Source: Macrostomum lignano (Eukaryota). From it: DNA of 64,000 bases. The DNA is taken from positions 262,441-326,440 of the forward strand of contig NIVC01000866.1 of assembly GCA_002269645.1 (NCBI GenBank), written 5' to 3'. This document shows, in pieces, positions 6,857 through 52,900 of the stretch; position 1 is the stretch's first letter, and each line of letters starts with the position of its first letter. The notes beneath the pieces are model-generated. The model saw only the letters and a list, made by a program, of their open reading frames with translations. It made no database searches and was not told the origin of the DNA. The translations under genes were made by a program, and so were the position numbers.

Positions 6857-17381
<10,525 letters not shown>

Positions 17382-17600: not shown

Positions 17601-18347
17601 CTAGGTGATTCGGACACTCAGGTGAGCATCCAGGTGAGCTCTGCAGATCGGACACCTGGCCCGCTGTTCCATGCTGATCCGGCCGAAGCAGCTCCGGCAG
17701 CAGCAGAGGTGCCCGCATGGCAGCAGGAGAACCTGCAGCGGCTGGGCGAAGCAGATCCGACATTCCAGACCGGCGGGCATCTTGACTTCGTCCGCGGTTT
17801 CGAAGCCGGGAAACTGGGCTGGCCGGTTGAAGACGGCGCACTTCGCCGCTAGGTCTCTGGCCTGCTGCGGCAGCTGCTCATCTCCGAGGCTTCGCAACCG
17901 CTGAGCCTCTGTGGGCTGTTGACGGAGCTGCAGCAGCTCGGCAGCCCGAGGGTTCGCCGCCAGAGTCTGAGCTGTTTCGGTGCTTAGACCGGCGAGCAGG
18001 GACCAGATGAGCTGGTCCTGTCGGGGCTGCTGCAGCATCGGGCGCACGATGAACTCCAGCAGGATGTCAGGCCGTTGGTCCAGCTGCAGGCGGAGATGCT
18101 GGCACTGAGGAGACCGCAGGGCGTGTGGCAGCCAGGCGTTGGTGTGGCGGGACCAGTCGCTGATACTGCAGCCGCAACTGAAGCAAGTGGCTTCGCCCTG
18201 GCTGTTGGGAAGAGCATAGAAGCCGCTGTCAGCCAGCTGACATGGCTGAATGTACTGCGGGTACCAGTGAGCTGCGATGGACTGCAGCCGATTCTCCCAT
18301 TGAGAATAGTCCATTTGGATCTCATGGCCTGACAGAGGCGAAGCCAT
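17601..18347 (-). CDS. Inhibitor of apoptosis (IAP) family protein: single BIR + C-terminal RING, intronless
   Basis: 248-aa ORF. BIR: RLQSI..W..LADSGFY..CFSC..ISDW..H..SPQC (CX2CX16HX6C). RING: CRIC..LLLPCGHLCCCRSC..CPICR. Confidence 0.92.
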   Translation of the reverse strand: MASPLSGHEIQMDYSQWENRLQSIAAHWYPQYIQPCQLADSGFYALPNSQGEATCFSCGCSISDWSRHTNAWLPHALRSPQCQHLRLQLDQRPDILLEFIVRPMLQQPRQDQLIWSLLAGLSTETAQTLAANPRAAELLQLRQQPTEAQRLRSLGDEQLPQQARDLAAKCAVFNRPAQFPGFETADEVKMPAGLECRICFAQPLQVLLLPCGHLCCCRSCFGRISMEQRARCPICRAHLDAHLSVRIT

Positions 18348-19335
18348 ATCAGCAGTTTTTAATAATATTAAAGCTTAATTCTTGCTACGGTTTTATTAAA
18401 CGAAGGAAAACCCGCGGCAATTCCATGAAGGGCCGGGTTTTATGCACTGTGCAGTGTACACACGAACTGGGGGAGGGGGAAGGGAGAGCAGAGCGGGAAT
18501 AGAGAAGTACATGTAGTATATGCGGTCGGACAGTAAAGTGTACACTTGGCACAGTACACTCCCTAGCGTAAAAACTGAAGTTCTCTTTTTTAAATGTACA
18601 AACACATTCAGCGCTACTACACTAACTTAAGGCACATGTACAAAGAAAATGCAATACAACCCAGGCCGCTTCGCAAACCGTATAGCAACGGGTGTACGAG
18701 AGGGGGTTTTTTCTTTTCAGTGGCGTTCGCAGAGGCGAACTTTGTTGCAACCCCAAATAAGGTCCTTGGATGGATATGGATATGGAATGGATCCCCCAAT
18801 GGATAATCCTGGACACGGCACTGTGTCTTTCACATATTTTAGAGCAAAAAAATGGGGAATAGCGTTGCATTAGGAGGCTGATGACGTCGTTGAGCTGGCA
18901 GAACAGTCAGAAGTCGCGGTCGCAGTTTTTTTCCCGACCAAAGTTTTGTCTATGGCGAAACTCTACTCAGCGCTGTGCTCAGGGAAGACTGATGATTAGC
19001 TCATGTCAGATAAAACAGGACGTTCAATCTGAAAGTCAAGGACCATTGAAATCATACGAATTAAAACAATTTTTTTAAGTTGAAACTAAAGGCATGATTA
19101 AATATGGTGAAATAAATAGTATGTTTTCAAAAATATTTCATAAGCGATTCCATTTAGACTACTTTGCCAAGTAGCTTGAGTAGCATGCCGCGAAACCGAC
19201 TACCGTATAATCTCGATAAGAAAAATTATCTTATTTATATTTTGTCGCATCTCCAGTTCACTTTTGCGCTTCCAAATTTAATGATTTTGTTGCAAAAAAT
19301 GCGCAGAGCATGTCTGAATTGTGACTGTGCCCTAC

Positions 19336-19787
<452 letters not shown>

Positions 19788-22657: not shown

Positions 22658-23085
<428 letters not shown>

Positions 23086-23825
23086 TATTTTCACTGTTTC
23101 CCGCTTGGAATGAGATGTGCATATATACTAACAATGGAAGTGAGGCATGGAGCAGCCAGTTATCATGTTTCACAATTCAGAGAAAGCAATTTCACTGAAT
23201 TATTGAAAATTCATATCCGGTTTGGCAGAAGGCAGCAGTGGAGCTTTAGGGATTTTGGGCGCTCCTGTCTCCCTTTGTCCTTCTGTTTAGGCAGCCTCGT
23301 TTCATTTTGAATTCTGAAATGCTGCTTTTTGTCTTCAGCTTAAAAAAACAGTATTGCTGTTTGTCACGTTCTGATTCCTGATATTTTGAGAGACCTCGAA
23401 GCGGACTGACCGTTAAGCATGGCGGCGCGGAGGGTGGGCAGCCTACACAGCTACAGAAGTGTCAATTTTAGACATTTTTCAGCTTTGCTTCCGCGCTCTG
23501 AAAGGAGATGCACGGCAGTCAGGAAAACAAAGAATTTCCATTTATTGTGGAAATTTCCCAGGAATTCTAAGCGGCTTTTGCTTTGTAATTAGAATTGCGA
23601 AGAAGAGTTGTCAACACGCAAACAACAGGAAATTATTGTGTCAAATGCTTGTTTGTCTTAAAGGCTTTCTCTCACTTTTAATTCTTAGCCAGAAGCTCCT
23701 CGGTAACCCAATCTGAGCATGGCTTCATTCAGCCCCATGTGTCCCATGCTTGAAAAGAGTTTGCGGCTATTCAAGATATCCTGGCAGTCCGTTTATACAG
23801 TTGATTAATGCTGAGGGGTGAGTAG

Positions 23826-24531
23826 TGAGGGGTTGTAGCCTAGTGTGGGTTGTAACCTATTCAGGGGGGTTGTAGCCTAATGGGGGGTTGTAGCCTAGTG
23901 AGGGGTTTTAACCTAATGAAGGGATGTAGCCTAGTGAGGGGTTGTAGCCTAGTGTGGGTTGTAACCTATTCAGGGGGGTTGTAGCCTAATGGGGGGCTGT
24001 AGCCTAGTGTGGGGTTGCAGCCTAGTGAGGGGTTTTAACCTAATGAAGGGATGTAGCCTAGTGAGGGGTTGTAGCCTAGTGAGGGGTTGTAGCCAAGTGA
24101 GGGGTTGTAGCCAAGTGAGGGGTTGTAGCCAAGTGAGGGGTTGTAGCCTAGTGAGGGGTTGTAGCCTAGTGAGGGGTTGTAGCCTAGTGAGGGGTTGTAG
24201 CCAAGTGAGGGGTTGTAGCCTAGTGAGGGGTTGTAGCCAAGTGAGGGGTTGTAGCCAAGTGAGGGGTTGTAGCCAAGTGAGGGGTTGTAGCCAAGTGAGG
24301 GGTTGTAGCCTAGTGAGGGGTTGTAGCCTAGTGAGGGTTGTAGCCTAGTGAGGGGTTGTAGCCTAGTGAGGGGTTGTAGCCAAGTGAGGGGTTGTAGCCA
24401 AGTGAGGGGTTGTAGCCAAGTGAGGGGTTGTAGCCTAGTGAGGGGTTGTAGCCTAGTGAGGAGTTGTAGCCTAGTGAGGGGTTGTAGCCTAGTGAGGAGT
24501 TGTAGCCTAGTGAGGAGTTGTAGCCAAGTGG
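23826..24531 (+). repeat. 19-bp minisatellite (GAGGGGTTGTAGCC[T/A]AGT) derived from a SINE/tRNA 5' head
   Basis: About 37 units; the last unit runs directly into a tRNA-like sequence. Confidence 0.92.
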
Positions 24532-24620
24532 CTAGAGCGTCGGACTCATGACAGAAAGGCCTGAGATTCGTTTCTCGACCCATTTGGAACAATTTGTGTT
24601 CTTGAGCAAGACATTTAAAT
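24517..24620 (+). mobile_element. tRNA-derived CORE-type SINE, 5' part
   Basis: A box TAGCCAAGTGG (24521-24531); tRNA-Met-like GCGTCGGACTCATGACAGAAAGGCCTGAGATTCG; degenerate B box; CORE-like TGTGTTCTTGAGCAAGACATTTAA (24595-24618). Confidence 0.7.
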
Positions 24621-24642
24621 ATTTAAACATTTAAATAAAAGA

Positions 24643-24809
24643 TGTTTTACTTTTCGTAGTAACGAAGACGAATGCAAGATGCTGAGTTAGGAAGAGATCG
24701 TAGATGCATGCAGCGCGTATATTTTCAGCAGCGAAGTAGCTGGCTGCTATACTTAAAATATGAATAAGGCTTCACCCATTAACCATAGAACTTAAGTTCA
24801 TACACAACA
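24643..24809 (-). repeat. 3' LTR (167 bp)
   Basis: TGTTTTAC...ACACAACA, identical by eye to 28737-28903. Confidence 0.97.
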
Positions 24810-24821
24810 CCCCCACATTTT
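24810..24821 (-). other. Polypurine tract
   Basis: AAAATGTGGGGG on the minus strand immediately before the 3' LTR. Confidence 0.7.
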
Positions 24822-24892
24822 AGCAATTAACCTGGAGAGAAATAAATGACTGTTTTCTATTTTGTCTAACGATCAAATAAATCAGAAATACG

Positions 24893-27259
24893 TCAGCCGA
24901 TCAGGGGCTTTTCGGAGCCTCTGACTTCGACGACAAACTTGGTACTCGGGACTTTGATCGCTGGTTGTCTCCACTTCAGCAGGAGTCGTAGTCTCCATTT
25001 CCTTCTCCTTGCTGCTGCCAACATTGGCAGGTCTAGGCGAGGTAATCTCTTGTGAGTTCTCTGTAGTCCTTGGCGTTGCATCAGATGCATGGACAACCCG
25101 TCATTTGCTGTCCAAGTAGGTATTTGATCCATGAAGTCCTTGGATTTCTTCTGGGACCTTGTCTGACTTTCCTTCTACGTTGATGTAGACAGGAATTGGG
25201 TAGTTAGCGGTTTGTCCCATTCTGTAAAGGTTGCAGTGAGGCGCGTTCTTGGGCGTTGCATAAACAGTTGTGCAGCAGGAATCGCTCCTTCGGAATTCGG
25301 TGTAGTGTTCTTCGAAAGGCAGAATGATATCAACACCTTCTCACATTCGGAACCTATGTCATTACTGTTCTGCTTCAGGGTCACTTTCAACTCTTGGATA
25401 GCTCTTTCCACAATCCCATTTGACTGGTGATGACCAGGTGGTGTTAGGACATGGTTAATTAGATTCTTCTTGAGAAATTCTGCGAACTATTTTGATCGAA
25501 AATTGGTTCCATTGTCAGTCACAATGCACGTTGGAAGTCCCATGTACTTAAATGTTCGTCTGCATGCTGGAATAAGAGAGTTGGCTGTGAGATTTGACAG
25601 CTGATGTACATCAATCCACCGAGAGAAGGAGTCGATGAGAACCAAGAAGTGTTTCTCCTTGAAGTATGCTATGTCCAGATGAACACGTTCGAAGAAGAAC
25701 TTTGCATCCTCCCATGAATGCAGATTTGCATTTGTTCGCTTTCTCGAATTTAGTTGGCAGGAAGGACACCTTTGAACGAAGCTATTGATCTGGGCGTCAA
25801 TGTAAGGCCACCAGAAGTACTCTCGAGCTAGTCTGATCATGCGCACAATGCCCGGATGATTCTCGTGAAGAATTTGAAGAATTTCTCTGCGCATGGACTT
25901 TGGAGGCACGATTCGGATCCCTTTGAACAGAATCCCGTTTTGAATGGAGTATTCCGCCTTGGATTTGGTGTACGGAAGCAGCTGTTTAGAAATGTAGCTT
26001 GGCCAATCTTGAGTAACAAACTTCTTGATAAAATCAATTTCAGGGTCTCTGGTGTTGGCGACACGCCGAAGAATTGTCCCAGAAGAAGAAAATTCTACGA
26101 GAGATTTTACCTCCAGCAGATTGACATCAAAATTTGAAAACGAAGTAGAAGCGTTTGTTGAAGGAATTCTGGACAGAGTATCTGCTGCGAGCATGGTGTC
26201 TCCTTTTGAGTAAGTGACAGTGTAGTCATAGGATCTGAGCAGCAATGCCCATCTCTGGAGTCTCGCAGAAACTCGGTCAGGAACTTTCGTTGTAGAGAAG
26301 ATGTACTGCAAAGGTCTGTGATCAGAGATGATTGTAAAATGACGGCCTGCCAGAAATTGATGAAAATATTTTACACCCTCGATAATTGCAAGAGCCTCCC
26401 GCTCAATGTTGGCGTAGTTGGCCTCAGCCTTGGTCAAAACTCTGCTTCCCAGCCATACAACTTCTTTTTGGTTCGTGTCGTGGAACAGCACAAATCCGAC
26501 TCCACTCTGAGAAGCGTCGCAGGTTAGAAACAACGGCCTTTTTATATCATAAGAAACGATTCGACCTTCCGTTACAGCAGCTTTCAGTTGGGAGAACGCA
26601 CTTGAGTGAACGACAGTCCATTTCCACTGAACCCCTTTCTTTAGGAGGTAATAGAGCGGCTTGGCGATCATAGAGAAGTTCCGACAAAAAATCCCGTAGT
26701 GTCTAAAGGTGCATATAGCACTTCTCAATTGATCCCGGTCTTTTGGCTCTGACAAGTTGGATAGAGCTTCCACTCTTGCAGGATCAGGCAAAAGTTTCCC
26801 ATCTCGGAGGAGAAATCCCAGAAATGTGACTTCTTTCTTGCACTCCTGAGTCTTACGCTCATTGATCTTGAATCCATGCTTTTTCAGTTTTTCTTTGATT
26901 TGCACCAGGATCTGTCGATGCTGCTCCACTGTTTCAGTGCCTAGAATGATGTCGTCCTGATAAGAAGCAGTGCCTGGTATTCCTTTGAGCAAGATATCCA
27001 TAACTTCCTGAAATATCAGTGGTGCTGCCGATATCCCAAATTGTAACTTGCGGATCGCAAAATGTCCTACGTGGGTGGAAATACACGTACGATCCTGACT
27101 TTCTGGCGTTAGGGGAATCTGCAAGAATGCGCCTTCGAGATCGAGCACTGAATACGCACTTTCGAATTTGGGATCTTTTGAAGGATTTCTTTCAAAGTTG
27201 GCAGTCGATATCGATCTCGGTCTATCCGTCTGTTGAGAGTGACTGAATAGTCTCCACAC
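24893..27259 (-). pseudogene. pol: Gypsy pol: RT-RNase H-integrase, disrupted
   Basis: YSVLDLEGAF, YQDD, LTCDAS, REALAI, HENH..CPSC, HLD..TDNG..VERA. In-frame TAG at 25487-25489 inside the integrase core; a +2 frameshift near 27155. Confidence 0.93.
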
Positions 27260-28674
27260 AGTCTAATGGGTCTCTTTGATCCTTCTGGTTTCAACACAGG
27301 AACAATAGGGCACGATACCTTAGGCGAGTGAACTGGGTAGATGATACCTGCACTTTCCAGTCTTTTCAGCTCCAGTTCAACCAAAGTTTTAATTGAGAAC
27401 GGAAGGGATCTGGCAGGAAAGCACATTCCATCGGCAGAGGCACCGTCCTTCAGGCGAAAGCTGGCCTGGAATCTTGAATTTTCATCACACTGCACTGGAT
27501 GGCACAGAAATTCGTCTACCGTCAATAGGTTGAAGGTACGAATAAAATTCATTCCCAAAATGGCTTGACTAGATGGGTCCCCGACATATATGTCTCCGCA
27601 TGCCGTTTTGCCGTTTCTCAGCTCAATCGTGACGTCCTTAGTCATGCCTCGTACGGAAACTGAAGCTCCCCCGAAAACTTTGAGTGATCGAATGTCCGCG
27701 TCAACCATGTGCAATCCGGCTTGCTCTACGATGGTTACTGGCAGAATTGTTACCTGACTACCAGAGTCGACGCACATATGGACTGTGAAATCACCGATCG
27801 TGCAGACTATTTTCCAGAGTTCGTCGCATGGAGTAGCCTTGATCACCGAGTACACAGCTGAATCAGGTGGATCAGCGTCGGTTGCTTCAACTTCCGCGTA
27901 CGTGACTTTCTTGCTGCCACCGATGTTGGACCTGCATGCTCTGGCAATGTGCCCGGTTTTTCCGCACTTGTGACATGTCGCATTGCGGAACTTGCAGGTA
28001 TTTCTAAGATGACCCGGGTTACCACAGGAATGGTAGCTAGACTTAGAATGATTCGGCGTTGTTGGCATTGGCCTGGATACCGTTGGATACTTTTGGTTGC
28101 TGCCAGTCTTCTTGTGAGTGGTTTTCTGCACTGCTGCGACGGTTTTGCTCGAATCAGTAGCTTGAGATACGGACTCCGATAAGAGACTATCCTTAACCGC
28201 AGTCTCTAGATCCAGCTTTTCCTTCACTAGTAATTTTTGCTTCAGAGAATTATCAGCCAGTCCGAAAATATACTGCGAAAGAATTAACTCTTCTCGCAGG
28301 TTGCCGAATTCGCATTTGTTGGCCTGTGTCTTCAGTCTCTCCAAAAACTTTGTCACCGACTCACCCTGTATTTGGACCATGGTATGTAGCAGATGTCTGT
28401 CGTAGTGAAGAAGGCGCTTGGGTTTCAAGTGGCTCAGTACCGCTTCTTTGATGAAATCGAACGTACACTTTGTATCGTTTAAAACGTCTTCTGGCTGCAC
28501 AAGTGTCTCAATCAGTGAAAATGCGGCATCTCCACACGTAGCAAGTAGAACGGCTTTGCTCTGGTCATTCTTTTCCGTTGCGCTAATGTAAAAACCGAGG
28601 CGCTTGAAATACTGTTCGACATCGGGGTAGCACAGCGGCATCTCCCCCAGTCGGAAGTCGAGTCCGGAAGACAT
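27109..28674 (-). CDS. gag: Gypsy gag-protease-RT N-terminus
   Basis: 521-aa ORF; CHKCGKTGHIARAC knuckle (the first knuckle has C>Y), protease CVDSGSQVT, RT start PIVPVLKP..IRLCGDY. Confidence 0.9.
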   Translation of the reverse strand: MSSGLDFRLGEMPLCYPDVEQYFKRLGFYISATEKNDQSKAVLLATCGDAAFSLIETLVQPEDVLNDTKCTFDFIKEAVLSHLKPKRLLHYDRHLLHTMVQIQGESVTKFLERLKTQANKCEFGNLREELILSQYIFGLADNSLKQKLLVKEKLDLETAVKDSLLSESVSQATDSSKTVAAVQKTTHKKTGSNQKYPTVSRPMPTTPNHSKSSYHSCGNPGHLRNTCKFRNATCHKCGKTGHIARACRSNIGGSKKVTYAEVEATDADPPDSAVYSVIKATPCDELWKIVCTIGDFTVHMCVDSGSQVTILPVTIVEQAGLHMVDADIRSLKVFGGASVSVRGMTKDVTIELRNGKTACGDIYVGDPSSQAILGMNFIRTFNLLTVDEFLCHPVQCDENSRFQASFRLKDGASADGMCFPARSLPFSIKTLVELELKRLESAGIIYPVHSPKVSCPIVPVLKPEGSKRPIRLCGDYSVTLNRRIDRDRYRLPTLKEILQKIPNSKVRIQCSISKAHSCRFP

Positions 28675-28724
28675 CGGAATGAAGATTTGGTGACTGCAGT
28701 ATCGTCCCGCGAAGAATTAAATTT

Positions 28725-28736
28725 TCCTCGTCGCCA
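28725..28736 (-). other. Primer binding site, tRNA-Ser(GCT)-like
   Basis: TGGCGACGAGGA directly follows the 5' LTR; complementary to the TCCTCGTCG-CCA 3' end I recall for eukaryotic tRNA-Ser(GCT). Confidence 0.8.
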
Positions 28737-28903
28737 TGTTTTACTTTTCGTAGTAACGAAGACGAATGCAAGATGCTGAGTTAGGAAGAGATCGTAGATG
28801 CATGCAGCGCGTATATTTTCAGCAGCGAAGTAGCTGGCTGCTATACTTAAAATATGAATAAGGCTTCACCCATTAACCATAGAACTTAAGTTCATACACA
28901 ACA
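28737..28903 (-). repeat. 5' LTR (167 bp)
   Basis: Identical by eye to 24643-24809. Confidence 0.97.
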
Positions 28904-29030
28904 TCTACATTGCATTTTGCAGTTCAACCAGCTGTAAAATGGTACCAGCATTAACTGGGGTAATTGAGGGTGTGTGGCGACCCCCTAGTCCTTGGACTGA
29001 ACAGCCGTACGTAGCCTTTGGTACGCAGCG
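28904..29030 (+). mobile_element. CORE-type SINE, 3' continuation beyond the gypsy insertion
   Basis: TTCAACCAGCTGTAAAATGGTACC resembles the second half of the CORE domain (CTGTAAAATGG). Confidence 0.55.
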
Positions 29031-29472
29031 CTGCTCAATAGCTGCGGCTGAGCTCTCGGTAGCAAGTCTGCCATAACTATATCGGTGCTGTCAACGTCCC
29101 CAAACTTCACAGCCATCAAAACCCAAATAATTTTTTTATTTCTGAAATTGGAAAAGTTACATTGGGGGAATATTTGTGAATTTTTAGAGATCCAATAAAA
29201 TCCTATAAACTAAAAAATGAGCTGTCTCTAGGTACCCACCTGTCAATACGATTGATTACAGAACAAACGGTAGAGGCGTAGAGACTGTCCCGACGTCTAC
29301 TTGTCTGGTTTCTCAGAGAACAGGGAGAAGGGCTTGAGCAGCCAATCAGAAGGAATTGGTTCTGAGCCTTAAAAGCCCAAATATAGACGGAAAAGTCGTC
29401 ACCTGCTGCGCCGTCCCCTCTTCAAGCGGCTCTTCAGCTTCGCATCCCGGAAGTACTGATGCAAAACTGATT

Positions 29473-30726
29473 ATGCAGCAGGCACCCGAGCAGCTGCTGC
29501 TCTCGATGGGACAGCAACTCGCCAACTCGACCGGTCAGAGTCTGTTCGACCCGCGGCCATCCACTCCGCCCTTCGAGGAAGTCACCTGGAGCCTCACCCT
29601 GGCCTTCGCCCTGTTCGCCGTGTTGCTCAACGCCTACCTGCTGCGGGCGCTCACGCAGAAGCGCCAGGCGTCGCGGCACGGCAAGACGAACAGCTTGCTG
29701 GTGCTCACCGGCTCCGAGATCGCCCTCAGCCTCTTCTTGGTTTGCTTCCTCATCGTGTACCGCGCCTCGGGCCGGCTGCACCTGGAGTCCGGCTTCCACA
29801 CGCTGCACGCCATCAGGAACTACTGGCTGCTGGCCATCACGGCCTGCCGCCTCATAGTCATCGTGCAGCCGTTCCGCGCCGCCCAGGCCGGCGTATTCTT
29901 CGGCGCCCGTCGCCAAGCCCAGACCCTGATTGGCATCGTTGTCATGGTTACCGCCGTTGTCTGGCTGAGCGCCGCCGCCACCGCCCCAGGAAAGATGCCG
30001 GTGCAGCTGGTCAACCAGAGCGTCATCCAGTTGGCTCCCGACGCCACCGCCGCCGCTGCCGCCGCTGTTGAGCAAGTCGTCAACCGGTCTCAGCCGGCGG
30101 ACGCTTTCGGCCGCGCCGAGGGCCGAGCGCTTCGTGAGGCGCTGCGGCCGACGCTGATCCGCTATGCCGTCGTGATGTTCCTCGGCAGCATCCTGCCGGG
30201 CGCCTTCATCGCGGGCATGGGCGCTCGGATGGCCGCGGCGCTGCTGAGCCGGGCGTTCAACCGGGCCGCGGCCAGGCGCTCCTGCAAGCTCGTCCTGCTG
30301 CTGTCGCTCGGCTTCGTCGTCTGCGAGCTGCCGTTCGCCGTGATGCACATCGTCACCGTGGTGTACATCCTGTGCACCTCGAGACCGCTGCCCGAGCTGG
30401 AGGTGGACCTGGAGTGGATGGAGTGCCTGGCGAACTTGGGCCTGGCCTTTGTCCCCGTGGACTCCTGCCTGAACTTCCTCATCCTGACGCGGTACAGCAG
30501 GAGCTTCCGCAGGGCTCTGCGCGCCGGCTGCAGCAAGCTGAAAAGCTCCCCGGCGGCTGATGGCACTGCCGGTGGCACCGCTGGAGGCAACGGAAACGGC
30601 GGCGGCGGCGGACTTGGACAGTCGAGGCGGGGCAGCTGCGGCGAGCTGGTGGCGCTGCAGAGCTGGAACTTCAGCAGCCGGAACGAAATGCAGCGGCAGC
30701 AGCAGCAGCCACGACCGAGAGAGTGA
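29473..30726 (+). CDS. Intronless class A (rhodopsin-like) orphan GPCR
   Basis: First ATG at 29473 within a long GC-rich ORF; seven hydrophobic segments with N in TM1, CRL..I.QPF after TM3, LP in TM5, CELP in TM6, SCLNFLI..SRSFR at TM7/helix 8. Confidence 0.88.
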   Translation: MQQAPEQLLLSMGQQLANSTGQSLFDPRPSTPPFEEVTWSLTLAFALFAVLLNAYLLRALTQKRQASRHGKTNSLLVLTGSEIALSLFLVCFLIVYRASGRLHLESGFHTLHAIRNYWLLAITACRLIVIVQPFRAAQAGVFFGARRQAQTLIGIVVMVTAVVWLSAAATAPGKMPVQLVNQSVIQLAPDATAAAAAAVEQVVNRSQPADAFGRAEGRALREALRPTLIRYAVVMFLGSILPGAFIAGMGARMAAALLSRAFNRAAARRSCKLVLLLSLGFVVCELPFAVMHIVTVVYILCTSRPLPELEVDLEWMECLANLGLAFVPVDSCLNFLILTRYSRSFRRALRAGCSKLKSSPAADGTAGGTAGGNGNGGGGGLGQSRRGSCGELVALQSWNFSSRNEMQRQQQQPRPRE

Positions 30727-31198: not shown

Positions 31199-31231
<33 letters not shown>

Positions 31232-31293
31232 CTAAGGACAGACAGACAGACAGACACTAAGACAGACAGACAGACAGACACACACACACACTA

Positions 31294-31382
<89 letters not shown>

Positions 31383-31395
31383 CACACACACACTA

Positions 31396-31439
<44 letters not shown>

Positions 31440-31644
31440 TGACAGACAGACAGACACACACACACACACTAAGACAGACAGACAGACAGACACTAAGGAC
31501 AGACAGACACTAAGACAGACAGACACTAAGACAGACAGACACTAAGGACAGACAGACAGACAGACACTAAGACAGACAGACAGACAGACAGACAGACTGA
31601 CTGACTGACAGACAGACAGCTGACAGACAGACAGACAGACACTA

Positions 31645-31684
<40 letters not shown>

Positions 31685-31743
31685 TGACAGACAGACAGAC
31701 AGACAGCTGACAGACAGACAGACAGACACTAAGACAGACAGAG

Positions 31744-31801
<58 letters not shown>

Positions 31802-31848
31802 TGACTGACTGACAGACAGACAGCTGACAGACAGACAGACAGACACTA

Positions 31849-31913
<65 letters not shown>

Positions 31914-31947
31914 GCTGACAGACAGACAGACAGACACTAAGACAGAC

Positions 31948-31997
<50 letters not shown>

Positions 31998-32048
31998 TGA
32001 CTGACTGACTGACAGACAGACAGCTGACAGACAGACAGACAGACACTA

Positions 32049-32081
<33 letters not shown>

Positions 32082-32176
32082 CTAAGGACAGACAGACACT
32101 AAGACAGACAGACACTAAGGACAGACAGACAGACTGACTGACAGACAGATAGCTGACAGACAGACAGACAGACAGT
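31198..32176. repeat. (GACA)n microsatellite (GTCT on the minus strand)
   Basis: Seen directly, with CTAA/CTGA interruptions. Confidence 0.97.
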
Positions 32177-35151: not shown

Positions 35152-36342
35152 TCACAGGGGCCGCCAGTCGATGGCTCCCAGGAGCTGCGCCACCATATCC
35201 CCACGTGCAAAGTCGCTCAGACTAGTGGCGCCGATGTTGCGGCGAATTGTTTCGAGCCTAGGGCAGGTCCAGAGGTGGAATTGGTCCGGGACATCCAGGC
35301 AAAGACGGCAGGGGCCGCCATCGGAGATGCCTGTGCGGTTGCGATAGTTAGTTGGAGTCAGGGCAGTGGCCTGCTCTGACTTGCGCCACGAGGATTTGTT
35401 GGCGGCGTGGTCCCTGATGGAAGGAGATCGGTTTACCGTAGACCTCGGCCATGTGCCCTTGAAGGGTTGGACGGTACTTGAGATGATGACGAATGCGCTC
35501 TTTAGCGGCTGCAAAGGATATTTCGGACTCGTCCTGTGGCAGGGTGGCCGCGAGCTAAGCCTCTGCGTCGACCAGTTCGTTACCGGGCACTCCGAATGTC
35601 CCGGAACCCATTGCAGGGTAATCTTCGTGTGCATGGCTGCGTTAGCAAGGAGATCTTTAACTTGCTCAAGCCGCAGGTTGAGGGTTGGACGGTCAGCTTT
35701 GATGGCGGCGATGGCGCTCTGGCTGTCGGTTAGAATGACGGCTTGGCGCGGCTCGGAGCTGATAATGTCTTCCAGGGCGAGCTTGATGGCCATTAATTCG
35801 GCTTCATAGGAGTTGCACCAGCGACCCGCTGCTGCGTGCCCGCGGCGACGCATGGTGCTTTCTTGGTCGAGGAGGATCCATGCGGCTCCGCCGTTTTCGA
35901 CCCCTCCGGTGGCCGAGCCATCCGTGTAGTAGGTGCAGGAACCTGGGCAGCGTTGCTCGATGGCTGTAAAAATTTGTTCGGTTGGAGTTGCTCCCAGGTC
36001 TGGCAGGTTGGTGAAACAGTCGATGCCCAGGTCGACAAGAGAGGCCCAGGGTGGCCGACGGGTAAGGTGGAAGGGCATGCGCGGGAGCGGCATCATGGAG
36101 TCGCAGATGCGCCTCGCTTGTTCGCGCAGGCCTCTGTTAGCCTCAAGACGGACGTTCGAGTGCCTTTCGCAGATCTTGCGAAGTGGGTCGCTGAGAGGGC
36201 GACGGATGGCTTTCTCGTAGGTGAGCAGAGCACGCCTGCGGGCCTCAACGCTGATGGGGTCGACCTGAGCTTCCAGGTAGATAGCGGTCGAGCTCATCCA
36301 GGCGAGTCTTGGACAGCCAGGGCGTCCAGGCCGATGCTGCAT
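35152..36342 (-). pseudogene. LINE RNase H and C-terminal zinc knuckle
   Basis: YYTDGS, EAELMAI, ILTDSQSAI, WVPGHS, CRLC..HLWTCP; frameshift after PGHS. Confidence 0.88.
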
Positions 36343-37429
36343 GCCAGATCACCGACTCGACCAGAGCACGGTTGACTTTGATCAGGAGGAGGCGATCCCA
36401 TCCCCATTCCCGGTTGGCTAAAGCTTTGATGATGGCGGTTCGACGGAGCATTTTGTTCTTGATTTCGCTCAGGTGTTTGTCGAAAAGAAGACCGCGGTCA
36501 ATCGTGACCCCGAGGAATTTCAGCGCCAGCTTGCTGGGGATAGGACGGCCAAGCATCGAGAGTTGAACGGTGGTGTCGCGATCGGCTCGGTTTCGGGAGA
36601 ACAGACAGTATTCAGTCTTCGACGGGTTGACCTCGATGCGAAGATTTTTGGCCCACTTTTCGATGAGGCGGAGGGCCCTTTGAATGCGTTCACGGACATG
36701 TTTCTGCCGGACACGGTGATGTTTCTGCCGGAGGCCCAGATAACGAGGTCGTCCGCGTATCCACTGTAATCGACATCTTGGACGATGTGGTCAGCCCAGG
36801 CGTTGATATAAAGAAGGAACAAGACCGGGGGCTGACGGCGCCTTGCGGGACGCCCTCCCGGAGCCTGCGCCATTTTCTGCCTGCCCAGCTGGCAGAGCTG
36901 GCAAATCATCTCACCATACAGGCCGGCAGGCCTTCATCCATCAGGCGGGAGATGAGCAGGGTCCTCCAGACGCGGTCGAAAGCGCACGAGCAGTCGATCA
37001 GTACTGCTAGGGTCTTCAGGTGCGGAGACTGTTCCCAGCCGTCCTGGATGGCCTGGACCAGTCGGGCCACTTGCTCCTCACAGCTACGGCCGCGCTGGAA
37101 ACCGGCTTGCCAGGAAAGGATTTTATTGCGTTGCTCCAGCCAGTGAAAGAGGCGGTCCAGGATCAACCTCTCCAGATTTTACAACAGATAGAGATGAGGC
37201 TGACGGGGCGGTAGCTTCCACACTCTTTGGGGTCTTTTCCGTCCTTCAGCAGCGGGATGATGACGGCCTTTTTCCAGGCTCCTGGGCAAAGGCCGATGCT
37301 CCAGCAGCGATTGAAGATTTTCAGCCAAGCGTTGAGCCAGGAATCAGGGAGATTAATGAAGAAGGCGGCCTCAATGCCGTCGGGGCCGCATTTTTTGCTA
37401 GGATCTAGTTTGTCGATGGCCCTCCGCAA
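36245..37429 (-). pseudogene. LINE reverse transcriptase (frameshifted fragments)
   Basis: WKKAVIIPLLK, YRPVSL, QAGFQRGRS, IDCSCAFDRV, PVLFLLYI, YADD, KFLGV. Confidence 0.92.
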
Positions 37430-37482
37430 CTCTCCTGTAGTGAAAGGAAGGTGGTAGTTGAGATCGTCGGAGTGGTAATTAG

Positions 37483-39491
37483 CTAGCCTGTTGGCAGTGT
37501 TGACCTGACCTTAAACTTGCGGTCAGCTGATGTCAGGTGAAGGGAGCTGATGTCTTTGTAGTGGCGGCCGAAGGCGTTCGCCTTGTCCTTGTCAGTGCAA
37601 AGTTCGCGTCCGTCAACAACCAGAATTTCATTGGGTTTCGACCCTTGTCTTCCGTTGTTGAGGCAATTGATGGTTCTCCAGGTCTGTTTGGGGTCGGAGG
37701 ATTCTGACAGTTTGTGCACGTACTCCTTCCAGAAAGCGCTTTTCTTGTCGGCGCAGAGCTTGCTGAGTTCAAGGCTCTTTTCCCTCCAGAGGTCGGGCGG
37801 GGCGCCAGACTCACGGAGTTGGTTCCGTGTATTCCTGAGTTCGATCAGTTCCTCGTCCCAGTACGGCTTATTCTTCTTAGAGACCTTCTTTTTCGGAATA
37901 GCGGCAGAGGCGGCAGTCAGCATGCCGTTGCAAAGGCGGGTGACTTGCTGCTTAATGGTACCGCGGTTGAGATTGGTATCGGCCGCTTCGAGCAGGGACC
38001 TGTAGACTGGCCAGTCAGCTTTCTTCCAGGACCAGTGGAACTGATTGGGCTCGGCAAGGGTGTTCCGGGGCGCTTGCAGCGTCACAAGGATGGGTTTGTT
38101 ATCGGAGCCAAGTTCATTCAAAACAGTCCAGGTGCACTGGGGGGCAAGTCCGCCGCTGGCAATGGTGAGGTCGGCGGCGCTGTTACGACCGGAATGGCGG
38201 TCGACACAGGTGTGTTCACCAGTGTTCAGAATGCGGTACTGAGAGGTGGAGCACCAGTCAAGGAGGCATTTGGATTGAGCAGCGCTGTCTCTGCCTTGGT
38301 CTCCCTTGCTGCCCCAAGCTGGATGATGGAGATTCAGATCCCCAGTGATGAGTTCGCGGTTGTGACATTTGAGCCAGTCATCCACGCTCGGGTGCTCTCG
38401 GTGGTCTTCGCCTTCCACCCGCCGGATGGGGGGGGGCGGTAGATATTGGAGATGATCAGCTTATTTCTGGCGGAGTCATTGATGACGAAGCGACATCTTT
38501 CAGTGGTGCCGCCTGACCATCCCCGGAGTTTACGAAATGGAATGCCTTGCCGAATGTAGCACAGGAGGCCGCCTCCTTTGATGTTGGGGTCGCGCCTTGC
38601 AACTTTTCGGTCTTTGCGGATCACAGCGAACCCTGGCAGTTTGGGAGTCTTGTGGAACGATGTGAGCTTACTTTCTTGGACAGTGATGATATCAGCTTGG
38701 ACCCTGTGAGCAAGCTCTTCGAGCTCTCCGATCTTGTTCGAGATGCCGTCCGCATTCCACTGGATAATTCTAAGGTTCGGCTTAGCATTGTTCCAGCCGG
38801 ACAGGATGCGCGGGAGGTGTCTCAGGGGTCCAGAGGGGTCATCTTCAGACGGAGATGTCGGGCTCGGCCGGCGGGCAGCATTAGAGCAGCAGTTGTATCT
38901 CCAGAGACCTCGGCTGACTTCGCGTTTGATCTGCTCCCGTGTCGCAGCCGTGCACGCATTGTGGAAGAAGCCTTCGCAGGTATTACAGCAGGCGATGACG
39001 GAGCTGACCCTGACGGGTTTGTTACAGTGGGCGCAATTTGGTTTCTCTTCGCGGAGGCGACGGAGGAGCTCTTCACGTCTGCTGTATCCACGATTGGCGC
39101 CATCAGCAGGTTCCTCTGGTGAACCGGTGGCCTGGTTGCCGGGATCGGTGTCCGGGCCGCCAGAGCAGGTTGGGCAGCGCCAGTCGGGAGAACCGATCTT
39201 TTTGTCGGCCGCCCAGCGGCTGAGGCCGGAGCAGTCACGTTGGAGGTGAAAATCATGCCCGCATGGTTGGCAGTGAAGGGATCTCCCTCGGAGGGGGCGA
39301 CCACACTCACGCCGCCCACAGATACGAGTATGAGTCGGGCCTGGACCTGGGTTCGGCTCGATGTCACCGGCCCTGAGCAGGAGCGTTGAGAGCCGGCGTG
39401 CCTCGCTGCCAGCGTTTCCGGTGTCGCAACCAAGGTACACCCTGCTGGAGAAAATCGCGAAACACAAAAGCAACAGTTGCACGTGGGACAT
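37483..39491 (-). pseudogene. LINE N-terminal leader/2A, two PHD fingers and APE endonuclease
   Basis: ATG at 39491; DIEPNPGP; two Cys/His fingers; IIQWNADG, VQESK, NIYRPP, TGDLNLH, DLTI, GSDN(H); frameshift at the G9 run 38428-38436. Confidence 0.9.
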
Positions 39492-39515
39492 GGTGTCCGA
39501 TTTACGGCGCTCTTC

Positions 39516-39517
39516 GT

Positions 39518-39549
<32 letters not shown>

Positions 39550-39803
39550 ATGATGTTGTTGTTGTTGTTGATGATGCTGTTGTTGTTGTTGTTGATGATG
39601 ATGATGTTTTTGTTGTTGATGATACTTTTGTTGTTGTTGCTGTTGTTGTTGATGTTGATGATGTTGTTGTTGTTGATGATGATGATGTTGTTGCTGTTGT
39701 TGTTAATGATGATGATGTTTTTGCTGTTGTTGTTAATGATGATGATGTTGTTGTTGTTGTTGATGATGATGTTGTTGCTGTTGTTGTTAATGATGATGTT
39801 GTT
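39516..39803. repeat. Mixed (AAC)/(ATC) trinucleotide tract in the LINE 5' region
   Basis: Seen directly (GTT/GAT on the plus strand); in frame with the LINE ORF. Confidence 0.95.
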
Positions 39804-40420
39804 CCTGTTGATCCTGCACTGCTGTCCTCCCGCTGCGGTTGTTGCTGTTGCTGCAGGAGGCTGGCCCGCCAGGCCAAGCACAGCCAGGACCCCAGCCAGC
39901 AGAAGCTCTGGCAGCCTCCCTCGGGAACTCCTTACTCGATTACGAGACTCTGCTTCCCACTTTCGCGAGTGATACTTTACTTCAATACTAGGACATTCTT
40001 GAAGCCGGAACTCAAGTAGAAAGCAGCAGGTATCGGAAATCAGCGCTGTTAATTAGGTAATTTGCTCAAAGCAGAAATGAGAATCACCCAGCCCAGGAGG
40101 CGCAGTAATTTGATGTCTGTGATGATATAAATACTTGAAACTGCAAACCGGCTGGCCTTTGTGATGGCATTGCTTTGATTCCCGAGTCCCGAGCCTCAGG
40201 AAAATGGTGCGACAGTCTGCGCCTGCTCTGTCAAACAGCTGGTCTTGAAGGTGACCCGCGGCTGGCTATGAAATTAGCAATTAGGAAGCTCTTCTCTGCG
40301 CGCAGGTGTTAAATGCATAGATCAGATAGATATGCGCAATGTGGGCGCATGTACTTATAGTCGGGCACAAGCAGACTTTAGGAATTGTAGTGCTAGTGTC
40401 TCTGACTATGTAAGGTCAGT

Positions 40421-41410
<990 letters not shown>

Positions 41411-49912: not shown

Positions 49913-52900
49913 ATGAACTATGACAGACCTACATACCGGCCACCATCCGAACAAGTAAGAAGAACATGATTATATGGAATAAAATGCACTATCAAGCCTT
50001 TTTTAATTTCAGGAGGTTCGGGGACTACTTTCTCTTTGATTTCATTTTGACTTTCCTAACTCACCTTACCTTACTTGTAATTTAACTTGTTGTAATAGTT
50101 GTAATGGTTCAAACACGCAATGCCAAAATCACGAGTATTTTTTGGTTTGTCATTTAACACATTTTTAAATTTACTTATCCCAAAAAATTATTATTTAGAT
50201 TAACTGCCGCCTACTTTTATTAGTTACTGTATGAGCAAAAATATCTACGCTCATATGAAGTACCACTTGAAAGAAAATTATTTCAGATAACATGAACTAC
50301 TTTCTGAATAAATTTCAAGTCTCCCTTTATAACAAAAGTTCCCAACGTTCAAAAGCTTATTTTAGTTTTTAAAAGCCAACAGAAAATTCAGACTTAACTA
50401 AAGCTAAACAAAAAATCAACCCTAGAAAATTAAATATTTTGCTTAGTTTCTTTGTGTTCATTAATTTTCCTGTAGTTAATAATAATGCTACAAAATATTA
50501 ATCAAATGTTCAATGTATTTATAAGTACAAGTTGTAATTTATAATGCATTCAAAACACACTTAGCTAAATAAAACACTTTACTAAAAACACATCAGCTGA
50601 AGTTTACTTTTTTTTATCTTATGCAATGGATTGCACTATTAAACTTATATTTACTAAATTAATATGAATGTCGAAAAAAACTAAGATGCAATTTCGTTTG
50701 CAGTTGGTCGATCTTCACATCTATGTTGTGCCGGCTTACCTGTGGCACGACCGTCTTCGCAGTGCCTTTAACCAAGTGATTGGAGAGAGCGTATCTGCGG
50801 GTTTCGTTAGGTGATTTAAATATTTCTGCCAAATTTGTTTAACTATATTCTTTGAAATATTGCTTCAATCTTGCCAAACTTTCTTTCTCATTGCAGAGTC
50901 CCACCAGACATTCATTTGGATCATTTGCGAAGCGAAATTGAAAAACAGTTGGGCTTTGAAGTTGTACCAAGAAGTTTTGTCTATTGCAAGAGCGTGGGGC
51001 GGTGCCTTACTCAGGTAAAGTCAATTTCTTGAGCTGTAAATGTGACACCCTGTAGCCCGTAACAGTATGTTGTGACAGTGTCTATTGCTTTGTGACAGTG
51101 TCTATTGCTTTGTGACAGTGTCTATTGCTTTGTGACAGTGTCTATTGCTTTGTGACAGTGTCTATTGCTTTGTGACAGTGTCTATTGCTTTGTGACAGTG
51201 TCTATTGCTTTGTGACAGTGTCTATTGCTTTGTGACAGTGTCTATTGCTTTGTGACAGTGTCTATTGCTTTGTGACAGTGTCTATTGCTTTGTGACAGTG
51301 TCTATTGCTTTGTGACAGTGTCTATTGCTTTGTGACAGTGTCTATTGCTTTGTGACAGTGTCTATTGCTTTGTGACAGTGTCTATTGCTTTGTGACAGTG
51401 TCTATTGCTTTGTGACAGTGTCTATTGCTTTGTGACAGTGTCTATTGCTTTGTGACAGTGTCAATTGCTTTGTGACAGTGTCTATTGCTTTGTGACAGTG
51501 TCTATTGCTTTGTGACAGTGTCTATTGCTTTGTGACAGTGTCTATTGCTTTGTGACAGTGTCTATTGCTTTGTGACAGTGTCTATTGCTTTGTGACAGTG
51601 TCTATTGCTTTGTGACAGTGTCTATTGCTTTGTGACAGTGTCTATTGCTTTGTGACAGTGTCTATTGCTTTGTGACAGTGTCTATTGCTTTGTGACAGTG
51701 TCTATTGCTTTGTGACAGTGTCTATTGCTTTGTGACAGTGTCTATTGCTTTGTGACAGTGTCTATTGCTTTGTGACAGTGTCTATTGCTTTGTGACAGTG
51801 TCTATTGCTTTGTGACAGTGTCTATTGCTTTGTGACAGTGTCTATTGCTTTGTGACAGTGTCTATTGCTTTGTGACAGTGTCTATTGCTTTGTGACAGTG
51901 TCTATTGCTTTGTGACAGTGTCTATTGCTTTGTGACAGTGTCTATTGCTTTGTGACATATGTATCATTTCAAAACAGATTCAACCCGCATTGCTTCAGGT
52001 TCGGGGTCACCAGGAGCAAGAAATGAAGGTGAAGCACTTTCTGCCACCTCACGTAAGTTTTGTCGAAAGTAGTCCAAAGTTCATATTTCTGGTTAACCAT
52101 TAGCCTTACAGAGCTCTCACTGCCACTGTTCCCTAGGCCTACTGCCCTGAGATATTCGTGCTTGACTCCGAGGTGGCCAGACGATCCCAGACCAGCTCAA
52201 ACGGTTCCATGGCCTCCAACAGGTCCAACAACACTGAACAGAGCAGTAATGAGCAAATTGAATGAGTTTTCATTTCAATAAGAGTGCATGCAGTCTCCTC
52301 GAATAATGAAAATTTAACCACACGGAACTGTTGAAATTTTTCAGGCAGTCGCTCAGGCTTCCACAAGCGGCTGAACCAGACAAGTAAGAGGGGTCAAGGA
52401 CGTCCCAGCTGATGGTCCTTGGAATCGATTTCCTACATTTTTATTTTTACAAAGAAATCAACTTCTTTCCAGCCGTCTATCACGGAAAAGCGCCGCAGGT
52501 GACGCAGAAGGGAGGAACTGGAGTTTACATTGGGCCCTACCCGATGCAGAGCTACCCGGGACTGAACTCACGGCCTGGCACCGCCGGCAGTGAGTCTCCT
52601 GCAGCCTCTGACCCTGTTCTCGTCTCATCGCATCTCATCTCATCTCATTCCATCTCATCTCATCTCATCTCATGATCTCATCTCATCTCATCTCTTCTCA
52701 TCTCATCTCATTTCATCTCATCTCATCTCATTTCATCTCATCTCATCTCATCTCTTCTCATCTCATCTCATTTCATCTCATTCCATCTCATCTCATTTCA
52801 TCTCATCTCATCTCATTTCATCTCATCTCATCTCATCTCATCTCATTTCATCTCATTTCATCGCATCTTATCTCATCTCATCCTAACACATCTTATCTCA

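Follow-up and report, generated by a model that had tools for sequence, protein, structure and literature searches.

Minisatellites and satellites that grew out of SINEs are already established in mammals and reptiles. Two studies (PMC9659126, PMC3389668) put the number of human minisatellites derived from transposable elements at 7276, with 2663 of them Alu-linked, and mention a B1-derived VNTR family in the mouse; through these studies, the Alu and B1 cases lead back to Jurka & Gentles 2006, Bois et al. 1998 and Ahmed & Liang 2012. These arrays have short units, lie inside or at the edge of single SINE copies, arose after insertion of the SINE, include partial duplications of 5' ends and grow in a polar fashion. 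In squamates, Vassetzky et al. 2023 described SINE-derived satellites (sSats; PMC10702118) in which the unit is part of a tRNA-related SINE and the terminal unit extends to the SINE terminus. Their variants were homogenised as the arrays grew, their origin was put down to unequal recombination, and their units, taken from box B, the body or the LINE-derived region, measure 67-215 nt and occur at many loci per genome. In bivalves, whole SINEs that carry highly conserved domains are arranged in tandem-like structures (PMC11481361).

Here, we analysed a stretch of 64,000 nucleotides from the flatworm Macrostomum lignano (contig NIVC01000866.1, positions 262,441 to 326,440; "the window") that contains an 18-bp minisatellite fused to the 5' end of a SINE. 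The array resembles the Alu and B1 minisatellites in each of the respects listed above. However, the Alu and B1 SINEs are 7SL-derived and contribute other positions to the units, whereas the present SINE is of the tRNA type, and no Alu or B1 case is described in which a tRNA-type head contributes its first 18 nt, A box included, as the unit (PMC3389668, PMC9659126). With the squamate sSats it shares the partial, tRNA-related SINE unit and the terminal unit that extends into the SINE, but its unit has 18 nt, is confined to positions 1-18 with the A box, and is known from one locus (PMC10702118). The 18-nt unit, the A-box-only position and the flatworm host are thus what is new in comparison with the known cases; no new mechanism or function is shown here. 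What sets the array apart is only that the sequence it came from remains joined to it and can be read. With the source segment, the oldest and youngest units in order, and an unamplified copy for comparison, the locus makes a useful teaching and reference case. We consider it probable that the array is a neutral SINE-derived minisatellite, which arose by duplication of the head after the SINE had inserted, grew in place, and was joined later by a Ty3/gypsy insertion.

The surroundings are rich in repeats. Simple and tandem repeats make up 15% of the M. lignano genome and LTR retrotransposons 21% (PMC5730564). Within the window, tandem arrays account for 34% of the sequence, and 28 of them reach 200 bp or more; their share in five further M. 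lignano loci is 13-36%. Against such a background it is unsurprising that a SINE head should have seeded a minisatellite, and the locus could be a handle on why this genome makes so many minisatellites. An earlier reading of this DNA, made from the letters alone (the sequence-only reading), had called the array a rare case of satellite birth; given the Alu, B1 and squamate precedents and the share of minisatellites in the window, we no longer use that word. The features discussed below are collected in Table 1.

Table 1. Positions in the window of the minisatellite, the SINE from which it derives and the retrotransposon that splits the SINE
Feature	Position	Strand	Basis
Older diverged minisatellite part, units 1-13	23828..24063	+	Tandem Repeats Finder and unit parse
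Young homogeneous minisatellite part, units 14-38	24064..24512	+	unit parse
Unit 39, the SINE's own first 18 nt (AGGAGTTGTAGCCAAGTG)	24513-24530	+	sequence reading, unit parse, Rfam alignment
5' part of tRNA-derived CORE-type SINE	24513..24620	+	alignments; tRNA origin deduced via L002
A box TAGCCAAGTGG	24521-24531	+	9/9 specified positions of TRGCNNAGTGG
B-box-like site GATTCGTTTCT	24565-24575	+	6/9 match
CORE-like domain, first half, TGTGTTCTTGAGCAAGACATTTAAAT	24595-24620	+	alignment
22 AT-rich nt ATTTAAACATTTAAATAAAAGA at retrotransposon junction	24621..24642	+	three-way alignment
Ty3/gypsy LTR retrotransposon inside SINE, 4.26 kb	24643..28903	-	LTRs, Pfam
LTRs, 167 bp each, 100% identical, TG..CA ends	24643-24809; 28737-28903	-	sequence
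Polypurine tract, adjoining 3' LTR	24810-24824	-	sequence
RT-RNaseH-integrase ORF, frame stops within integrase core	25487-27259	-	Pfam
Gag/protease ORF	27109-28674	-	Pfam
Primer-binding-site-like TGGCGACGAGG, next to 5' LTR	28719-28736	-	sequence
SINE 3' part: CORE-like second half (..CATTGC..CCAGCTGTAAAATGG..) and body	28904..29117	+	collinear with L002 9419-9570

Tandem Repeats Finder reported one array at 23823-24530, with a period of 18, 39.3 copies, 90% matches and a score of 1079. A unit-by-unit parse (23828-24530) resolved it into 39 units, comprising 34 of 18 bp, 3 of 17 bp and 2 of 20 bp. These values replace the 19-bp period and the roughly 37 copies given by the sequence-only reading, in which the unit as written has 18 letters. 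In the register of the downstream SINE, the unit reads AGGGGTTGTAGCC[T/A]AGTG. The motif GGGGTTGTAGCCWAGTG, allowing up to two mismatches, occurs 35 times in the window, always within the array, while shuffles lead one to expect 0 occurrences. The last unit runs directly into GCTAGAGCGTCGGACTCATGAC... with no gap, and the sequence downstream of it, GCTAGAGCGTCGGACTCATGACAGAAAGGCCTGAGATTCG..., is continuous with the array. The claim that the tandem array passes without a break into a SINE head is therefore borne out by the Tandem Repeats Finder result, the unit parse and the pattern matches. With a length of 0.7 kb and an 18-bp unit, the array lies in the size range of minisatellites (units of about 10-100 bp, arrays of at least 0.5 kb), and it also has their internal variant repeats and polar turnover, in the form of an old-to-young gradient and block duplications. 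Because 18 bp equal six codons, three frames of the array are open; the translated array had no protein-database match. Pattern and profile searches that covered the window and ~140 kb from other M. lignano loci found no second 18-mer array. No match to the head pattern GTAGCCWAGTGGYTAGAGCGYYGGACTC turned up in the viral, metagenome or prokaryote collections, nor did the viral collection contain a match to a two-unit array pattern.

The origin of the unit was resolved by a copy of the SINE that lacks the array. Two M. lignano scaffolds, L002 and L004, are homeologous to the window and collinear with its positions 45.3-55.5 kb, at identities of 94-98% and 89-94%, respectively. The homeologous scaffolds have the accessions NIVC01000112.1 and NIVC01002971.1. 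The divergence between L002 and the window is of the order of the published subgenome SNP divergence of 2-2.4% (PMC10733133), and L004 is more diverged. Upstream of the UBE2K homeologues, an intact SINE copy lies at L002 9310-9640, and L004 carries an identical one. This copy has a single head and no array; it starts with AAGGGTTGTAGCCTAGTGG, and its boundary reads ...TTATTATTAA|AGGGTTGTAGCCTAGTGGTTAGGGC. Against the Rfam tRNA model, its head scores 34.8 bits (gathering score 29; E 3.9e-6) over the full model 1-71, the A of AGGGTTG being aligned to tRNA position 1. Its first bases match the T-variant array unit at 16 of 16 positions. Since this single head passes Rfam and matches the unit throughout, the unit corresponds to SINE positions 1-18, including the A box. 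More precisely, the Rfam alignment shows it to be tRNA-like positions 1-17 plus one extra G in the G run, covering the 5' half of the acceptor stem, U8/A9, the 5' half of the D stem and the first D-loop bases. When 20 array units of the window were compared with the SINE, the 18-mer alone matched (score 16 vs 7.6±1.1; 0/100 shuffles). The units are homologous to part of the SINE and the terminal unit is continuous with the remainder of the element; the array is derived from the SINE head. The sequence-only reading, which had traced the unit to the acceptor-stem, D-arm and A-box part of the adjacent SINE, was correct in this, because an independent unamplified copy exists and no other array matches the SINE. 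It was also right that each unit contains most of an A box: single units agree with the consensus at 8 of 9 specified positions (TAGCCWAGTGA), as against 9/9 in the true head.

The element itself was characterised by comparing three copies. The third, L001, is a metagenome contig with a complete SINE, the one contig retrieved by a gapped, generic CORE pattern with one motif in each flank of the insert; among viral and prokaryote sequences this pattern had 0 matches. Against the Rfam tRNA model, the L001 head reaches 18.4 bits, and the pattern CTTGRGCAAGRCA..CAGCTGTAAAATGG is common to L001 and the window SINE. The window head aligns to L002 at 72% and to L001 with a score of 60 vs 20±3. At the insert, the left flank match ends at L002 9415 and the right flank match starts at 9419, both at ~72% identity, and both flanks are also collinear with the L001 SINE. 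The downstream sequence is SINE-like, and the block that had been noticed after the head does look CORE-like. An nhmmer profile built from the three-way SINE alignment recovered just these pieces and nothing else in ~200 kb, so that the M. lignano sample amounts to two independent copies in ~200 kb of genome. The element is dispersed in so far as it occupies two independent M. lignano sites (window 24.5 kb; L002/L004) and has a relative on an unrelated metagenome contig. Collinearity between the window and L002 breaks at L002 9965, i.e. the window offers no empty site for the L002 SINE, and flank matches that could be SINE target-site duplications, TTGATTA in the window and TATTAAAG in L002, are 7-8 nt long, no more than chance would give where the sequence is AT-rich. 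All three copies (window, L002 and L001) can be aligned, each over ~130-145 nt and with scores of 55-83 vs 22±3 for shuffles, to a working version of the MIR consensus rather than a database entry, and the CORE assignment is accordingly a lead. CORE-SINEs/MIR reportedly go back to Gilbert and Labuda in 1999. In these members of the HCD SINE superfamilies, as apparently in the present SINE, a conserved central domain comes after the tRNA-like head (PMC11481361). To judge by the alignments, we are dealing with a SINE of tRNA origin that carries a CORE-like domain. Literature searches returned no paper describing SINEs in the genus Macrostomum, and the locus appears to document a tRNA-derived, CORE-type SINE there. 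The SINE is old: identity between the two M. lignano copies has fallen to ~72%, and both have a B box that matches at 6/9 positions.

The window copy is less well preserved than that in L002. ARAGORN found 0 tRNA genes in the window, and the Rfam tRNA model (RF00005) gave no hit to the window SINE at the gathering threshold and none at E≤10 on either 2.5 kb or 156 nt. The predicted fold of the window head is no better than that of shuffles (z -1.65). By both tRNA finders and by its fold, the window copy is not a functional tRNA gene. A check of the head against the Rfam tRNA model thus fails for the window copy and succeeds for the L002 copy. At the anticodon position, the window copy has CAT, L002 has CAC and L001 has CAA; as the triplet differs among copies, the parent tRNA cannot be named, and the description of the head as tRNA-Met-like is withdrawn.

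The units change systematically along the array. Units 1-13 carry the T variant throughout (GCCTAGTG-type), differ in length (17, 18 or 20 bp) and have 1-3 mismatches each; the same region contains a 109-bp higher-order duplication (23823-23931 vs 23932-24040, 91%). Units 14-39 are nearly identical to one another, and the only common variants in units 14-38 are T/A and, close to the SINE, GGAG. In addition, a block of 197 bp or more occurs twice, at an offset of 287 bp (24047-24243 vs 24334-24530, 192/197 identical), and its end is the SINE head. Both the A variant and the GGAG variant are restricted to the young part and present in the true SINE head, with GGAG found only in four of the last five units; unit 39 thus has the local GGAG and A variants in common with its neighbours. 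At position 14 of the unit (leading A = 1), T is the ancestral state, as in the L002 and L001 SINE copies. Read together, the gradient and the block duplications form the signature expected of in-place unequal exchange, conversion or slippage.

These observations are best explained by the following course of events. An old copy of the tRNA-derived CORE-type SINE would have inserted at the locus, and once it was there, the 18 nt at its start (tRNA-like positions 1-17, with the A box) would have been duplicated in tandem. Expansion of the array in place would have followed, through unequal exchange between sister chromatids or homologues, through gene conversion and/or through replication slippage; the newest turnover would lie mostly at the SINE-proximal end, where the head itself takes part as the last unit. 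Later, the Ty3/gypsy element would have entered the SINE body. The origin of the unit in the SINE head, the polarity and blocks of the array, the interruption of the SINE and the abundance of repeats around it are shown, whereas how the first duplication came about, and that the array is neutral, are points that we infer. In the Haber-Louis model, short direct repeats flanking the source segment are required, and no convincing ones were found around this segment. On either strand, the array DNA folds more weakly than shuffled sequence (z +1.7). When G-quadruplexes were allowed in ViennaRNA, with RNA energy parameters, none occurred in the minimum-energy fold of the array. Structure-driven slippage is without support, because the array strands fold no better than shuffles.

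The segment that was duplicated begins exactly at SINE/tRNA position 1, a coincidence that a random 18-nt duplication would produce in about 1 of 18 cases. For this reason, an origin linked to the SINE terminus is possible: the first head duplication(s) would have occurred during retrotransposition, by a template switch of the LINE reverse transcriptase at the 5' end of the SINE RNA, or at a nick- or recombination-prone 5' junction, and amplification in place would have followed. Ahmed & Liang indeed describe partial-Alu duplications at the 5' end and regard the adjacent endonuclease site as a recombination hot spot (PMC3389668). However, the sole other independent copy (L002/L004) is single-headed, position 1 and positions 18-19 have no obvious microhomology, and a boundary coincidence of this size in one example is weak evidence. 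The 39 units, the gradient and the block duplications moreover require long growth after insertion in any case. We consider a birth at the terminus unlikely, and prefer a duplication that followed insertion.

Two further G-rich arrays, a 16-bp array at 12577-15440 and a 14-bp array at 15473-15685, sit 8-11 kb upstream of the 18-mer array. The 16-mer (AAGGGGTTTTAGCTCC) and the 18-bp unit both contain AGGGGTT[G/T]TAGC (11/12; score 13 vs 5.1±1.3, 0/200 shuffles), and the neighbouring 14-mer is similar to a diverged variant of the unit (10/200). These likenesses could place the 18-mer in a G-rich satellite family of independent origin, to which the 16-bp array is related, and make its contact with the SINE secondary, either because the SINE happened to insert beside the array or because the array converted the SINE head. 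Yet it is the 18-mer that matches an independent SINE head at 16 of 16 positions, including the CCTAGTG that is missing in the 16-mer, and that lies in register with the SINE. The 16-mer array has no GTAGCC intermediates and its 3' flank is not tRNA-like, and the motif common to 16-mer and unit is absent from ~140 kb of other loci. An independent satellite, largely refuted by the L002 copy, is highly improbable, and a SINE-derived array stands as the preferred reading.

The same likenesses can be read in the opposite direction, with the extreme 5' end of the SINE, its Pol III A-box segment, as a preferred seed from which head arrays arise recurrently in M. lignano and the 16-bp and 14-bp arrays as diverged descendants. 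Such a preference could come from a reverse transcriptase that switches template at the 5' end of the RNA; alternatively, nicks or replication-fork problems could occur at the 5' junction of the SINE. If this were true, a SINE promoter fragment would have founded a local satellite family; we find it rather doubtful. As a separate candidate, the 16-bp array was itself considered as adjoining a tRNA-like head and was rejected, as its flanks are not tRNA-like.

The copy number of the array comes from a long-read draft assembly. Homeologous arrays can differ ~2- to 14-fold in copy number: a 20-mer array has 44, 23 and 21 copies, and a 31-mer array has 179, 124 and 12.5. We weighed whether the array is real but owes its copy number and fine structure partly to the long-read-based Mlig_3_7 assembly. 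The window is Mlig_3_7 itself (L003, NIVC01000866.1:297786-319720, is 100% identical to window 35346-57280), and this assembly has been described as difficult, with repeats and redundancy (PMC5730564). The UBE2K exon of the window shares 99% identity with an M. lignano protein, and L003 is the locus of a member of that protein's cluster. The break in the integrase frame of the adjacent Ty3/gypsy element could also be an indel error. The variation among the units, however, is structured rather than random noise, with its gradient, higher-order duplicate and T/A blocks, and similar arrays recur at differing lengths in the homeologous scaffolds. That assembly errors shaped the array to any such extent seems a slim prospect, and we keep to growth in place.

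The SINE is split ~110 bp from its start by the Ty3/gypsy element and resumes at 28904. The sequence-only reading ended its feature at 24620, just short of the LTR retrotransposon, and the split went unnoticed there. The 22-nt segment at the junction is missing from the other SINE copies and may be filler or a local duplication. No target-site duplication was found for the Ty3/gypsy insert. In a protein search with its pol, examined piecewise like the rest of the element, the best match was 57% identical over about half of the query, and short partial matches reached 64%. The LTR element is very young, and its insertion is later than that of the SINE.

The sequence-only reading had also proposed that the array forms a series of TFIIIC half-sites upstream of one B box, acting as an insulator or giving an extended Pol III transcript. 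On this proposal, the A-box-like array and the single B box would make up a multi-start Pol III promoter or a TFIIIC-bound insulator. The A-box positions are kept in every unit as described above, and the A-to-B spacing at the SINE head is a normal 33 nt. Runs of at least four T are absent between unit 13 and 24645, inside the LTR, so that Pol III, once it had started in the last units, would not be made to terminate early; with this and the normal spacing, a few upstream units could in principle be alternative starts. The recruitment of TFIIIC, however, is anchored by the B box, and tDNA/ETC insulators are B-box sites; the A box by itself is not known as a recruiter of TFIIIC. Like these insulators, the array consists of Pol III promoter elements outside a working tRNA gene. 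They have B boxes and measured TFIIIC occupancy, whereas the array, known from its sequence, has an A-box-like segment only, next to a degenerate B box. Where a TFIIIC insulator has a consensus B box, the best match here is the 6/9 site with conserved positions altered. Furthermore, the SINE body is broken by the 4.26-kb insert, the window copy goes unrecognised by Rfam and ARAGORN, its head folds no better than shuffles, and the spread of variants follows the pattern of neutral array turnover. We consider a promoter or insulator role very improbable; the array is most likely without Pol III or TFIIIC function, as expected of a neutral minisatellite.

Elsewhere in the window, the ORFs include a BIR-RING ORF and a 417-aa ORF, the latter with one weak match in a representative protein search. 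A LINE lies at 35-40 kb, and an exon of the ubiquitin-conjugating-enzyme gene UBE2K at 45.9-46.4 kb.

The head unit, the tRNA-like 5' end of the SINE that is repeated in the 39-unit, 18-bp array, resembles two G-rich arrays further upstream. The 16-mer AAGGGGTTTTAGCTCC shares with it AGGGGTT[G/T]TAGC at 11 of 12 positions, a score that none of 200 shuffles reached, and the adjoining 14-mer TAGTGTGGGATTGA is similar to TAGTGTGGGTTG, a diverged variant of the head unit. No tRNA-like sequence was found in the flanks of either array, and no intermediates linking them to the head unit were found.

The Ty3/gypsy element that splits the SINE is young. Its two 167-bp LTRs are 100% identical, one of the junctions carries 22 nt of AT-rich filler (24621-24642), and the flanks (..AAAGA / TCTAC..) show no target-site duplication. 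The pol frame stops within the integrase core at 25487, beyond which only ORFs of 78-79 aa occur. The best match to pol in the protein collection has 57% identity across about half of the query, with short partial matches at no more than 64%. The insert now parts the array from a 417-aa ORF that starts about 350 bp downstream of the SINE 3' end. Neither this ORF nor the BIR + RING ORF is present as an exact sequence in the protein collection. A weak C/D-box snoRNA-like match to SNORD43 (23315-23378; E 0.25, 21.3 bits against a gathering score of 45), located 450 bp upstream of the array, is probably due to chance.

The same SINE family is represented at two homeologous loci, L002 and L004, by a copy that is intact and unamplified and lies upstream of the UBE2K homeologues. 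The collinear position in the window is without this copy, and collinearity ends at L002 9965 (window 45310). Among the copies, only the head of this one passes the Rfam tRNA threshold. The non-LTR retrotransposon in the window could be the partner LINE of the SINE. Its ORFs are fragmented between the endonuclease and RNase H domains, and no reverse-transcriptase domain was found in the two ORFs scanned. A (GTT)n / 24-27-bp repeat at 39516-39812, which encodes runs of N and I, either breaks up or lengthens its first ORF.

Features around the array and at the homeologous UBE2K loci
Feature	Position	Strand	Remarks
16-mer array AAGGGGTTTTAGCTCC	window 12577-15440		179 copies, 2.9 kb
14-mer array TAGTGTGGGATTGA	window 15473-15685		adjoins 16-mer array
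BIR + RING (IAP-like) ORF	window 17601-18347	minus	single exon; flanks array region
Ty3/gypsy LTR retrotransposon	window 24643-28903	minus	inside SINE
417-aa ORF	window 29473-30726	plus	no family match; flanks array region
Non-LTR retrotransposon	window 35152-39881	minus	Pfam endonuclease and RNase H domains
(GTCT)n blocks	window 8407-9152, 16016-16677, 19335-19786, 22659-23085, 31199-32175, 40422-41409		
SINE copy, intact, unamplified	L002 9310-9640; L004 9308-9638		same family as window SINE; upstream of UBE2K homeologues

Tandem arrays make up 34% of the window, 28 of them at least 200 bp long; in L002 and L004-L007, five further loci of M. lignano, their share is 13-36%. Of the 19 minisatellite units in the window, 13 contain a run of GGG or CCC. 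Six blocks of 0.4-1 kb, spaced 3-10 kb apart, consist of one and the same tetranucleotide microsatellite, (GTCT)n, in one of its rotations or as its reverse complement. Copy numbers of homeologous arrays vary by a factor of 2 to 14; a 20-mer at 51070-51957, for instance, has 44 copies in the window versus 23 in L002 and 21 in L004.
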